DNA of 64,000 nucleotides from Macrostomum lignano (lineage: Eukaryota). How positions within the stretch are numbered: the first letter of the stretch is position 1; each line of letters starts with the position of its first letter. Positions 29,099-32,496 of the stretch are shown piece by piece. The stretch covers positions 496,001 through 560,000 of the forward strand of contig NIVC01001022.1 of the NCBI GenBank assembly GCA_002269645.1. Reading direction: 5' to 3'. Under the pieces are notes generated by a model that was given only the letters and a program-made list of their open reading frames with translations, made no database searches and was not told the origin of the DNA. The translations under genes and the position numbers were made by a program.

Positions 29099-32000
29099 TC
29101 ATCGTTTAGCACTCGACGCTGTCGCCAATGAAGCCGCATCTTTCGGCGGCAGTGGAGGCGCCTCCTTGCCGTCTTTCGGTTCTTCGACTTCTTCATAAAC
29201 TTCTTCTTCCGTATGGCCAGCCTGCTGCTGCTGCTGCTGCTGCTGATGGTACACCGGATTCCTGTAACCAGCTGTTTGCCGCGCTGTTTGCGGCAGAAGT
29301 TGCGCTTGCTGAGCGGACGCTGAGTTTGACAGCAACTGTTGCTGCTGCTGCTGCTGCTGCTGACCTCTGTAATTCAGCACAACGAGGGATATAGCCTGGC
29401 GGATAGCCTGGTACGAGCTCGTAACTAAAAGGTCGGGATTCGATTCTCGACCCACTCGGAACAATTTGTGTCCTTGAGCAAGACGCTTAACTCTGCATTG
29501 CTTCAGTTCACCCAGCTGTAAAATGGGTGCCAGCATTAGCTGGGGTAATTGAGGGTGTGTGTGGCGACCCCACATTCCTTGGACTGAACAGCCGTACGCA
29601 GCCTTCAGATGCGCCGCGCAATAGCTGCGGCTGAGCTGTCGGTTGCAAATCTGCCCATTAGGGCAGGTGTAATCAATCAATATCAAACAATTCAATGATC
29701 GACAAATATCTAAACATTCTCACCCGTAATCTTGCAGCATACTGGACGGATCTCTCCGGCTGATGATGATTTGTTGACGCCTTTGACAACGCACAATGAC
29801 AAGCCCAAGCAGTCCAATGACTATGACAGCAACACCAGCCGCTGTTATGATCAAAATCTGAAATTAGTAAAGCAAATAACGATGTTTTGTTGAATGTCAA
29901 TTGATCGATACTTGAAATAAAAATATGGACGATGTCACTTGATTTTAATTCTGGTAAAAATATGTTGATCTGTGGTAAAAAATTCAAAAGGGAATTCTGT
30001 TTTGGGCGTTGTGTGGTGGAATTTTGGTCTCATGAAGCGACCCCCTCTGTTTTAGACGTGAATTTACTTACGAATAGCGCTACTTCTCATTTCTCTATCA
30101 GATTGCACGATTCACTCACCGACTGACCGCTTTCAACTTGAAACCCGGCCAGTACAGCTCCGCCGTTCTCATTTGTGCAGCCGGTAATTTCTGAATTGTG
30201 GAGGACATTCGATTTCAGGTGTAGCTATTTTTATAAGCTCGGGGTTTCCATGTTTGGTTAGTGCATTTAAAATTAGGGGGTTGAAGCCTAGTGGTCAGAG
30301 CGTCGGACTTACGACTGAAAGATCGGGGTTCGAATCTCGATCCACTCGGAACAATTTGTGTCCTTGAGCAAGACGCTTAACTCTGCATTGCTTCAGTTCA
30401 CCCAGCTGTAAAATGGGTGCCAGCATTAGCTGGGGTAATTGAGGGTGTGTGTGGCGACCCCCCATTCCTTGGACTGAACAGCCGTACGCAGCCTTCAGAT
30501 GCGCCGCGCAATAGCTGCGGCTGAGCTGTCGGTTGCACATCTGCCCATTAGGGCAGGTGTAATAGATTATTATTATTTATTATTATTATTCTACTAAATT
30601 ACTTGATGGCTTTAATTTTTATGGAGTTTTTAGAAATGCCGAAGTTAAAGGCTGGTAGGCGCAGAAATTTGATCTTATCGGTATTAAATTTCAGGTTTTC
30701 AGTGCAAGTGTAGCTGCAGTTAATTGCTCTTCATTCTGACACAAACTTTCTGTCGAAAATGCTTATCACTGAATTGCACAGCGCAATAATTGTCTCACCT
30801 AGCGAGTTTTCGCACCGCGTGTCGCCCCTCTGGCAGCTTGGATAAACCGGCTCTCCAGTGCACTGGGTGCTGCAGCGCCTACCGTATAGACCTGGAAGAC
30901 ACTGGACATTGATGGTCAGCGTTAAACTGTAAATTGTGACGTGGGTCTACGAGCGTATGATTACCTACAATGCCCTTGTTGCTGCTCTAGTATTTTAGCA
31001 GTCCAAGTACACTACGGGGCCACGAATTCAGTCTTAATAATTGACTTTTTCACTTATGCAGCTGCCCACCTGACGTATTTGTTGATTGGAGTGAAAAACA
31101 ACTCCTTCGTTACCGAGTTGTTCCATCGAGTCGGGACGGAGGGCAGCAGCCGATGGAACTCCTCAGTTAGTTCGCCGATGGTCTGGGGCACTGGATCGAA
31201 CGCGTCATTGTCCTCAATTTTAACACGAATCAGGAGCAAGTCCTGTGTTAGGAAACATTCAAAGTGTGCTTGGAGCGCGCGCATAGGAAATAAACATGCT
31301 CACGATATGACTAAAAAGACGTCGAAACTAACTCAACACACTTACAGGCAACTCTTGAAGCAGACGGAACTCTGCAGTGAAAAACTCCCCATTTAAACTG
31401 ACCACGTTGTCGAAGACATTCGAGTTTCTTGACTGCTCAAATCTGAAATAGATAGATAGATAGATAGATAGATAGATAGATAGATAGATAGATAGATAGA
31501 TAGATAGATAGATAGATAGATAGATAGATAGATAGATAGATAGATAGATAGATAGATAGATAGATAGATAGATAGATAGATAGATAGATAGATAGATAGA
31601 TAGATAGATAGATAGATAGATAGATAGATAGATAGATAGATAGATAGATAGATAGATAGATAGATAGATAGATAGATAGATAGATAGATAGATAGATAGA
31701 TAGATAGATAGATAGATAGATAGATAGATAGATAGATAGATACATAGATAGATAGATAGATAGATAGATAGATATATAGATAGATAGATAGATAGATAGA
31801 TAGATAGATAGATAGATAGATATATAGATAGATAGATAGATATATAGATAGATAGATAGATAGATAGATAGATAGATAGATAGATAGATAGATAGATAGA
31901 TAGATAGATAGATAGATAGATAGATAGATAGATAGATAGATAGATAGATAGATAGATAGATAGATAGATAGATAGATAGATAGATAGATAGATAGATAGA

Positions 32001-32496
32001 TAGATAGATAGATAGATAGATAGATAGATAGATAGATAGATAGATAGATAGATAGATAGATAGATAGATAGATAGATAGATAGATAGATAGATAGATAGA
32101 TAGATAGATAGATAGATAGATAGATAGATAGATAATGGTAGATAGACATTAGTAGATATATTATGGTAGATGCTCAGTACTCACGAATAACCTTGTGTTC
32201 CCAATTTAACGTGGAAAACGGGATCGCACAGGCCTCTGTTCTGGTCGCACGGCATTCCTGTCTCAGACAGCACCTGATGTGGATTCGAGTAGTTGGACAG
32301 TCTTATCCGAATGATGGCGCCGACTTTCGTTGACTGCTGCAGTGTAGGTGGCGGATTTCGGATGCGATTTTTGATGAGTTAAGTATTGGAGTTATTGGTA
32401 TCAAAATTTAATTATTGTAACTACCAAAACGCTTACCTGAGATGAGGATAAAGTGCTACTCAATAATAGGAGCAGAGAAGTCAATACAACCAGCAT
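29099..32496 (-). CDS. 8-exon single-pass membrane protein: signal peptide, Notch-ligand-like N-terminal (C2/MNNL) domain, divergent DSL-like domain, TM, polyQ tail (360 aa)
   Basis: Exons 32437-32496, 32185-32336, 31346-31442, 31070-31242, 30799-30926, 30120-30190, 29724-29857 and 29099-29366. All introns are GT-AG and phase-compatible; total 1083 nt = 360 aa + TGA. Key segments: [11 protein letters not shown]...PCD...CDPVFHVKL; IRVKIEDND; [39 protein letters not shown]; [29 protein letters not shown]. Confidence 0.85.
29386..29680 (+). mobile_element. tRNA-derived CORE-like SINE (copy B) in the last intron of the DSL-like gene
   Basis: B-box GGATTCGATTCT; body nearly identical to copy C; ends GTGTAATCAATCAAT. 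Confidence 0.88.
30276..30590 (+). mobile_element. tRNA-derived CORE-like SINE (copy C) with (ATT)n tail, in intron 5 of the DSL-like gene
   Basis: A-box TAGTGGTCAGAGC, B-box GGTTCGAATCT, CORE-like segment, 3' hairpin CATCTGCCC-ATTA-GGGCAGGTG, ATT tail. Confidence 0.92.
31447..32133. repeat. (GATA)n microsatellite, ~690 bp
   Basis: Direct reading. Confidence 0.99.

Follow-up and report, generated by a model that had tools for sequence, protein, structure and literature searches.

A 64,000-nucleotide stretch of the Macrostomum lignano genome (contig NIVC01001022.1 of assembly GCA_002269645.1, positions 496,001 to 560,000 of the forward strand; the whole stretch is called the window below) contains, on its minus strand between positions 32496 and 29099, what is probably an intact, stand-alone gene for a 360-residue type I membrane protein of the DSL lineage that has been cut down to its N-terminal end. 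The defining layout of Notch ligands is a C2 domain, a DSL domain and then EGF repeats; which portion of this ectodomain is required for binding, force transmission and cis-inhibition remains a matter of debate. The EGF-less variant of the Delta-like proteins described here is new and has so far been seen only in M. lignano.

Results

The minus strand was read from 32800 to 28800 and translated in all frames before the eight proposed exons were spliced. The spliced product comprises 1083 nucleotides (nt), that is, 360 codons and a TGA stop codon with no internal stops. All seven introns run from GT to AG, all acceptors end in CAG and six of the seven donors match GT[G/A]AG, and these are the cis-splicing motifs reported for M. 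lignano (donor GT[G/A]AG, acceptor CAG; PMC8629364). The intron phases are 0, 2, 0, 2, 1, 0 and 2. The parts of the gene are as follows.

32496-32437, minus strand: exon 1 (60 nt), start codon ATG and signal peptide (20 residues), with the phase-0 donor GTAAGC; the UniProt models P0003 and P0002 are identical here.
32336-32185, minus strand: exon 2 (152 nt), start of the C2-like module, with the conserved cysteine pair and an N-Y-S sequon.
31442-31346, minus strand: exon 3 (97 nt), middle strands of the C2-like module.
31242-31070, minus strand: exon 4 (173 nt), C2-like module, ending in the conserved TPxNKYV.
30926-30799, minus strand: exon 5 (128 nt), last C2 strand SLTLTINVQ and Cys1 to Cys5 of the DSL-like module (30901-30812).
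30190-30120, minus strand: exon 6 (71 nt), Cys6 of the DSL-like module (30179-30177) and the 19-residue stalk; the paralogue has a homologous exon in the same phase.
29857-29724, minus strand: exon 7 (134 nt), 22-residue transmembrane helix (29857-29792) and then the basic RCQRRQQ; the paralogue has a homologous transmembrane exon.
29366-29099, minus strand: exon 8 (268 nt including TGA), poly-Q tail with YRNPVY (29266-29249), the acidic YEEV (29197-29186) and PPLPP (29158-29144); present in the UniProt model P0001.
28841-28830, minus strand: candidate poly(A) signal, two overlapping AATAAA hexamers ~260 nt past the stop codon, a pattern match only.

The closest proteins to the spliced product are UniProt entries from M. 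lignano only, with 96-100% identity, which bears out the flatworm origin implied by the sequence-only reading of this locus. P0003 (160 residues, with the same start methionine) and P0002 reproduce the junctions between exons 1 and 2, 2 and 3, and 3 and 4, and P0001 (UniProt A0A1I8HAA8) reproduces those between exons 2 and 3, 3 and 4, and 4 and 5 and also includes exon 8. The exon 4 donor is used by P0001, which splices on to exon 5, whereas P0002 runs past it into the intron. The eight-exon model lies far beyond what chance would give. That reading had proposed eight GT-AG exons joined in one uninterrupted 360-residue frame, and this is borne out by the splicing, by the UniProt models and by the intron phases of the paralogue described below. 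Its remark that open reading frames recover none of the exons whole is true only loosely, exons 3 and 8 being contained within longer spurious frames. The gene is also hidden, as that reading put it, in the sense that a database of 5.8e9 proteins holds no full-length model of the window protein, but not in the sense of being absent from it: UniProt models that are cut short or joined to an upstream cadherin gene already cover exons 1-5 and 8, and P0001 and P0002 carry the automatic name "C2 domain-containing protein."

The same gene structure is found in a paralogue from M. lignano, P0005 (GenBank PAA93509.1, BOX15_Mlig022023g1, 393 residues, "DSL domain-containing"), which was retrieved with the ectodomain of the window protein in a phmmer search of representative sequences (E 3.1e-11, residues 7-174, ~32% identity). 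We could rebuild its coding sequence exactly at locus L001 from eight exons of 90, 152, 97, 149, 125, 77, 110 and 382 nt, with the intron phases 0, 2, 0, 2, 1, 0 and 2 of our model; exons 2 (152 nt) and 3 (97 nt) are equal in length in both genes, and exon 1 likewise encodes only the signal peptide and ends in phase 0. The architecture of the paralogue is that of the window protein, again without EGF repeats, with a Cys spacing of 8-3-8-7-6. Kept between the two proteins are the Cys residues, an N-x-S glycosylation sequon, TPxNKYVSL and the tail motifs. As judged from these sequences, the M. lignano family is made up of at least two old paralogue groups that are ~32% identical, both of them without EGF repeats.

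An alternative is that the locus is a decaying duplicate (pseudogene) or an artefact of gene prediction. A 97%-identical second copy elsewhere in the genome, the one behind P0001, changes frame after CSTQCTG in exon 5 and is joined directly to exon 8, leaving out exons 6 and 7, so that P0001 as modelled lacks Cys4-6 and the transmembrane helix; this and the missing full-length database model would fit decay. The anomaly of P0001 could reflect a soluble or broken allele, and an indel error in the older assembly of long reads would account for it equally well. Against decay, the 360-codon frame in the window is intact and all seven introns have good splice sites, and the intron phases, the Cys residues, the glycosylation sequon and the tail motifs have been kept alongside a paralogue with 32% identity. 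The substitutions between the window protein and the near-identical second copy (P0001, P0003) are conservative, and the two copies of the paralogue's group (group B), L001 and L002, differ by a synonymous divergence (dS) of 0.052 and a nonsynonymous divergence (dN) of 0.013, with a dN/dS of 0.24. We therefore regard a pseudogene or artefact as highly unlikely.

It is also very unlikely that the upstream cadherin gene extends into these exons as its 3' end, or that they belong to an obligatory fusion transcript, as P0001 and P0002 would have it. In these models, exons at 42597-42427 and 35365-35093 (minus strand) continue in frame into exon 2 or the 5' leader of exon 1, cadherin repeats are encoded farther upstream on the same strand, and both operons and trans-splicing occur in M. 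lignano (PMC8629364). However, the exon at 35365 meets its own stop codon (..AESAVGGTMI*) 12 nt past the donor used by P0002, and exon 1 supplies an ATG and a signal peptide of its own, at which P0003 begins. The join in P0001 omits the signal-peptide exon, so that a disulfide-rich domain would stay in the cytosol, and the gap of ~2.6 kb is too wide for the operon criterion of 1 kb. The eight-exon paralogue stands on its own, with Paf67 and GSHPx, and no cadherin, as its neighbours. The cadherin-fusion reading of P0001 and P0002 was rejected on account of the stop codon in the cadherin exon, the start codon and signal peptide of exon 1 and the stand-alone paralogue, and the gene in the window is taken as separate; since the genome has operons and trans-splicing, it is plausible that the fusions are read-through or chimeric models. 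The cadherin gene itself lies at 55095-57928 (minus strand), where open reading frames at 56159-57928 and 55095-56153 match Pfam Cadherin (E 2.8e-45 and 2.3e-22, respectively), with further exons at 42597-42427 and 35365-35081 (minus strand). Its probable last exon ends in ..GGTMI*, and this T-x-I C terminus looks like a PDZ-binding motif.

From its N terminus, the window protein consists of a leucine-rich signal peptide of 20 residues, a module of ~140 residues with two cysteines, a six-Cys module, a stalk of 19 residues, a transmembrane helix of 22 residues and a glutamine-rich tail of 111 residues; the signal peptide and the transmembrane helix are predicted by reading of the sequence, and the topology is that of a type I membrane protein. 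The six-Cys module has the form C-x8-C-x3-C-x8-C-x6-C-x8-C with a G-L-Y-G motif, and the spacing of 8-3-8-6-8, the retained LYG and the ~19 residues between the last cysteine and the membrane are all as the sequence-only reading had given them. An RGD tripeptide at residues 194-196 (30829-30821, minus strand) lies in the loop between Cys4 and Cys5 (CQRGDTRC); the paralogue has CRPDGSLVC at this place, and the tripeptide, being unconserved, may be a chance occurrence. In the tail, an [F/Y]xNPxY motif reads YRNPVY (residues 306-311) in the window protein and FRNPVY in the paralogue, the corresponding motif of the LDL receptor (LDLR) being FDNPVY. An acidic YxxV/L motif (YEEV in the window protein, YDEL in the paralogue) and PLPP are also common to both, and these three motifs have been kept in tails that are otherwise 22% identical. 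Lysines are few (4 of 111 tail residues in the window protein and 1 of 139 in the paralogue), and a C-terminal ATEV is absent from the window protein.

No EGF-like coding segment was found in any minus-strand frame between 35000 and 28300, and the sole match to an EGF- or DSL-like Cys pattern there is exon 5. The other Cys-containing open segments in this region come from reading the gene's own exons out of frame or from translating a repeat resembling a short interspersed element (SINE). Hence there are no additional EGF exons between 30799 and 29857, and with no Pfam EGF match for either the window protein or the paralogue, the earlier statement that EGF and DOS repeats are lacking holds. 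The SINE-like repeat is ~280 bp long and occurs in three copies with 91-97% identity, at 30285-30565 (intron 5), at 29424-29673 (intron 7) and, inverted, at 21597-21875. Its plus strand contains GGTTCGAATC, a motif like that of a tRNA T arm, but ARAGORN called no tRNA in the intron copies, and the Cys-containing pseudo-reading frames in its translation could mislead a search for exons. Most of intron 2 is taken up by an (ATAG)175 microsatellite of 699 bp (31448-32146), the translation of which gives rise to a spurious ATG-initiated frame of 273 residues (31328-32149) that swallows exon 3.

Homology to Notch ligands appears, from the sequence comparisons, to be supported at the level of the family only. 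The paralogue scores 25.8 bits as a whole protein on the Pfam DSL family (PF01414), for which the gathering score is 24.2, and a 63-residue segment of it scores 33.7 bits (E 4e-8) with no match to an EGF family; it has no match to MNNL (PF07657) at E<=10. A four-sequence family alignment was used as the query in hhalign, and as templates we took 14 canonical Deltas (from vertebrates, amphioxus, spider, snail, copepod and dragonfly) trimmed to C2-DSL. The two were collinear over query positions 7-180 and template positions 1-190, with a probability of 74%, a P value of 2.8e-5 and a score of 38.4, compared to 16.6 for the reversed template and 21.1 for the best of 30 column shuffles. The DSL part alone aligned with canonical DSL at 91.8% (P 7e-7) and the same region with Delta EGF1-2 at only 3.4%, in agreement with the sequence-only reading of a Delta/Serrate-like protein. 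MAFFT aligned all six cysteines with the canonical DSL cysteines, and the stretch encoded by exon 2 was aligned by hhalign to the GVFEL...C..FRVCLKH part of Delta. When a three-sequence family profile was run against PDB sequences, the top matches were Drosophila Delta (7alk, E 0.051) and Jagged-2 (E 0.13), both sub-significant and both in register at the C2/DSL junction. For the family, the assignment of the module to DSL rests on the Pfam match of the paralogue, the position of the module right after C2 and the collinear full-length alignment.

Structure prediction points in the same direction for the N-terminal module. From a multiple sequence alignment of the family only, with no canonical sequences, AlphaFold2 gave a core (residues 7-150) that is an eight-stranded sandwich, with seven strands and one reaching into the Cys module, at a predicted local distance difference test score (pLDDT) of ~50-70. 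In a Foldseek search of this model against the PDB, all of the top 30 matches were C2 domains or C2-type folds (AIDA, tardigrade AMNP), the top matches including E-Syt1 C2A (2e-5), otoferlin, PLC-delta1 and cPLA2. Jagged-2 C2-EGF2 was matched with an E value of 5e-5 and the longest alignments (179-187 columns), and Jagged-1 was matched with an E value of 2.7e-4. A second model, built from an alignment that also held eight canonical Deltas, reached a pLDDT of 71 and a predicted template modelling score (pTM) of 0.68, and its top 17 Foldseek matches were the C2-DSL parts of Jagged-1, Jagged-2, DLL4 and Drosophila Delta, with ~200 columns; since the canonical Deltas bias the alignment, this model speaks for compatibility and is no independent proof. 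The N-terminal module is thus predicted to be a C2 sandwich, the fold being recovered in both models at moderate to low model confidence. The claim made from the sequence alone, of a signal peptide, a C2/MNNL-like module, a DSL-like six-Cys module and a transmembrane helix, finds support in these fold and profile tests at the family level, and the expected likeness to C2 domains, with Jagged-2 and Jagged-1 among them, is seen already in the family-only model.

A number of results weigh against a place in the DSL lineage. Neither the window protein nor its 71-residue Cys segment has a DSL, MNNL, C2 or EGF match in Pfam at E<=10, with sub-threshold noise only (ADAM10_Cys-rich, SCIMP), so that of the two Pfam families to which the sequence-only reading had pointed, DSL is passed by the paralogue, and the window protein matches neither DSL nor MNNL. 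A phmmer search of the window protein against the PDB gave no match, its hhalign comparison on its own with canonical DSL is weak (37.7%, P 3e-4), and so is that of the family C2 part with MNNL (9.9%, P 3e-3). The canonical Cys spacing of DSL is 8-3-11-7-8 (Jagged-1); the Cys3-Cys4 loop of the window protein has 8 residues compared to the canonical 11, three fewer, and the Cys4-Cys5 interval has 6 compared to 7. The stretch F-C-R-P-R-D-D-x-F-G-H forms the Notch-contact face in Jagged-1 and DLL4. It is missing in the window protein, where all five canonical Notch-face residues are changed in the alignment with canonical Deltas, confirming the earlier observation that the RPRDD.FGHY loop has been replaced, and of this stretch the F and the first R are all that the paralogue has retained. 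The family-only fold model is of low confidence as a whole (pLDDT 53, pTM 0.49), and its Cys module is not resolved (DSL part pLDDT ~34). For the junctions between exons 5 and 6, 6 and 7, and 7 and 8, the model draws on paralogue homology and on the logic of frame and motifs only, and these junctions may be regarded as provisional. Relatives beyond M. lignano were not found in a single-sequence search of 1.84e9 representatives or in two word-seeded searches, by which other Macrostomum transcriptomes were perhaps not covered. Lastly, the family Cys module aligned with a repeat unit of P0006, an oyster MEGF10-like protein, at 93.2% (P 2.9e-7), which equals the result for DSL, and the pattern C-x2-G-Y-x-G-x2-C-x3-C alone is therefore not diagnostic.

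This last result raises the question of whether the six cysteines form just another EGF-like unit of the MEGF/laminin type, next to a sandwich unrelated to MNNL, with a likeness to Delta that is convergent or superficial. The equal score for the MEGF10-like unit, the lack of Pfam DSL and MNNL matches for the window protein and the weak C2-only alignment would all be expected in that case, and generic cytosolic C2 domains score as high as Jagged in the family-only fold search. However, the units of P0006 match EGF-type Pfam families and not DSL, whereas the paralogue lies above the Pfam DSL threshold with no EGF family match. Moreover, the collinear C2-DSL alignment is well above its shuffled controls, the DSL region of the family is unlike Delta EGF1-2, and DSL ligands have just this arrangement of an extracellular C2 and, right after it, a C-x8-C-x3-C module. 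We consider a convergent EGF-like unit improbable and retain the assignment to the DSL lineage. As a relative, P0006 itself was rejected, as it matches only via summed weak repeats. A metagenome protein from ENA, P0004 (1729 residues), owed its E value of 1e-21 against the ectodomain to 28 weak repeat matches and was rejected as a translated tandem repeat; it is an example of the inflated phmmer scores that Cys-rich queries obtain from repeat proteins.

The window as a whole is eukaryotic and repeat-rich, with a high density of minisatellite arrays of 20-25 bp period and, in addition, a (CTGT)196 array at 49698-50483 (23 rows in Tandem Repeats Finder with a score of >=200). The arrays lie, among other places, at 3233-4360, 43813-44884, 49698-50483, 50917-51710, 52828-54165, 59442-60499 and 62146-63683. 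The long open reading frames at 59424-60563, 62688-63734 and 50852-51739 merely translate such arrays, and none of the three matches a Pfam family. Downstream of the gene and on the same (minus) strand are three C-type lectin-like genes, each in a single open reading frame, at 27521-28264, 23247-24068 and 14683-15453; they score 22.4-23.4 bits on Pfam Lectin_C, around the cutoff of 22.6, and the one at 14683-15453 also has a weak PAN domain match.

Discussion

The window protein shares with canonical DSL ligands (Delta/DLL1/DLL4 and Serrate/Jagged) the order of signal peptide, predicted C2 (MNNL-type) module, DSL-like module, transmembrane helix and intracellular domain, as well as the six DSL cysteines, the (Y/L)YG after Cys1 and the Cys pair with an F.V.L strand at the start of C2, and its predicted fold agrees with the C2-DSL structures of Jagged and DLL4. 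It differs from them in having no EGF repeat at all, compared to ~9 in Delta and ~16 in Jagged, no DOS and no ATEV, in an LDLR-type FxNPxY tail with few lysines and in the lack of a Pfam MNNL or DSL match.

Divergent members of the group have been described before. The lineage-specific "Delta-like" proteins of lophotrochozoans, two of them in Schmidtea, and vertebrate DLL3 have no traceable orthology and have lost ATEV and some EGF repeats, and "Delta-like" has been defined by a signal peptide, MNNL, DSL, fewer than 7 EGF repeats, a transmembrane helix and an intracellular domain (PMC5356439). Set beside this definition, the window protein has the signal peptide, a predicted C2 fold, a DSL domain at the family level, the transmembrane helix and the intracellular domain; with zero EGF repeats it lies at the far limit of the definition, or falls outside it should a minimum of one EGF repeat be implied. 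The proteins described in that study retain some EGF repeats, whereas the window protein has none and its DSL module ends 19 residues from the membrane. Genes with a DSL or tandem DSL domains and no EGF repeats are known from bivalves (PMC8166818). These have been reported in bivalves only, as DSL tandem repeats, and a C2-DSL architecture with a transmembrane helix and an NPxY tail has not been described for them. The DSL proteins of Caenorhabditis elegans carry one or more EGF repeats, secreted forms occur among them, and they show no FxNPxY tail. Like the window protein, LAG-2, APX-1 and DSL-1 are naturally trimmed and lack DOS (PMC2504490). In the literature, we found no description of a C2-DSL transmembrane protein that combines an FxNPxY tail with a complete lack of EGF repeats, no mention of the paralogue locus tags and no mention of "no EGF repeats" together with "DSL domain."

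As for function, the C2-DSL head, placed a few nanometres above the membrane, would bind a partner that could be an EGF-repeat receptor such as Notch or, via C2, a membrane lipid. The tail, with its [F/Y]xNPxY, acidic YxxV/L and PLPP motifs and few lysines, would drive constitutive clathrin-type internalisation and adaptor docking. Since the Notch-contact residues are gone and EGF1-3 and DOS are absent, a role as a modulator or a repurposed surface receptor seems more likely than that of a classical trans-activating Notch ligand, and we regard actual binding of Notch by the window protein as rather doubtful. The sequence-only reading had put forward a decoy, a cis-inhibitor or a repurposed lipid-binding receptor as possible roles.

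It is quite possible, although we would not put it at an even chance, that the same architecture has no link to Notch at all and that the head is a receptor for lipid or another ligand, of the adhesion or engulfment type, with a tail that signals or internalises in the manner of LDLR or CED-1/Draper/MEGF10. The loss of the Notch-face residues of the DSL loop and the lack of EGF1-3 and DOS fit this, and the [Y/F]RNPVY and Y[DE][DE][VL] motifs in the tail have been kept between the paralogues. The Cys module resembles the oyster MEGF10-like unit, and Notch-ligand C2 domains bind phospholipid (PMC3888931, PMC5538765). With the LDL receptor and CED-1/Draper/MEGF10, the window protein has in common the [Y/F]RNPVY and YxxV/L tail motifs and a MEGF10-like Cys module, but it has no LDL-A, EMI or EGF arrays and carries an N-terminal C2 sandwich instead; in Pfam, both the window protein and the paralogue are without an EMI domain or an EGF array of the CED-1/MEGF10 type. 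In addition, the order of C2 and then DSL is otherwise specific to Notch ligands, and the paralogue retains FYYG, the F before and the R after Cys3 and a passing score for Pfam DSL.

At the other end stands a natural minimal Notch ligand, in which C2-DSL alone, ~19 residues above the membrane, would engage Notch EGF11-12 and the FxNPxY tail, nearly free of lysines in the paralogue, would give endocytosis independent of ubiquitin, Mindbomb and Neuralized. The intracellular domain of Delta can be functionally replaced by the internalisation and recycling signals of LDLR (PMC3063240), and by analogy an endocytosis-competent minimal ligand is conceivable. We nevertheless think it unlikely that the window protein works in this way.

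In conclusion, the public annotation of this locus is in need of correction, the UniProt entries being shortened or fused to cadherin, and the gene is probably best understood as encoding a DSL-lineage protein reduced to its N-terminal end. If it were a minimal ligand, it would be the natural counterpart of engineered Delta-LDLR chimeras, and EGF repeats and ligand ubiquitylation would be dispensable for, or deliberately removed from, one branch of Notch signalling in a regenerating flatworm. If it makes no contact with Notch, a C2-DSL head would have been reused as a new kind of surface receptor. A C2-DSL head on a short stalk, with an FxNPxY motif in place of the ubiquitin-dependent tail, would provide a test case for what the ectodomain and tail of these proteins do, in an animal where transgenesis and RNA interference are available.

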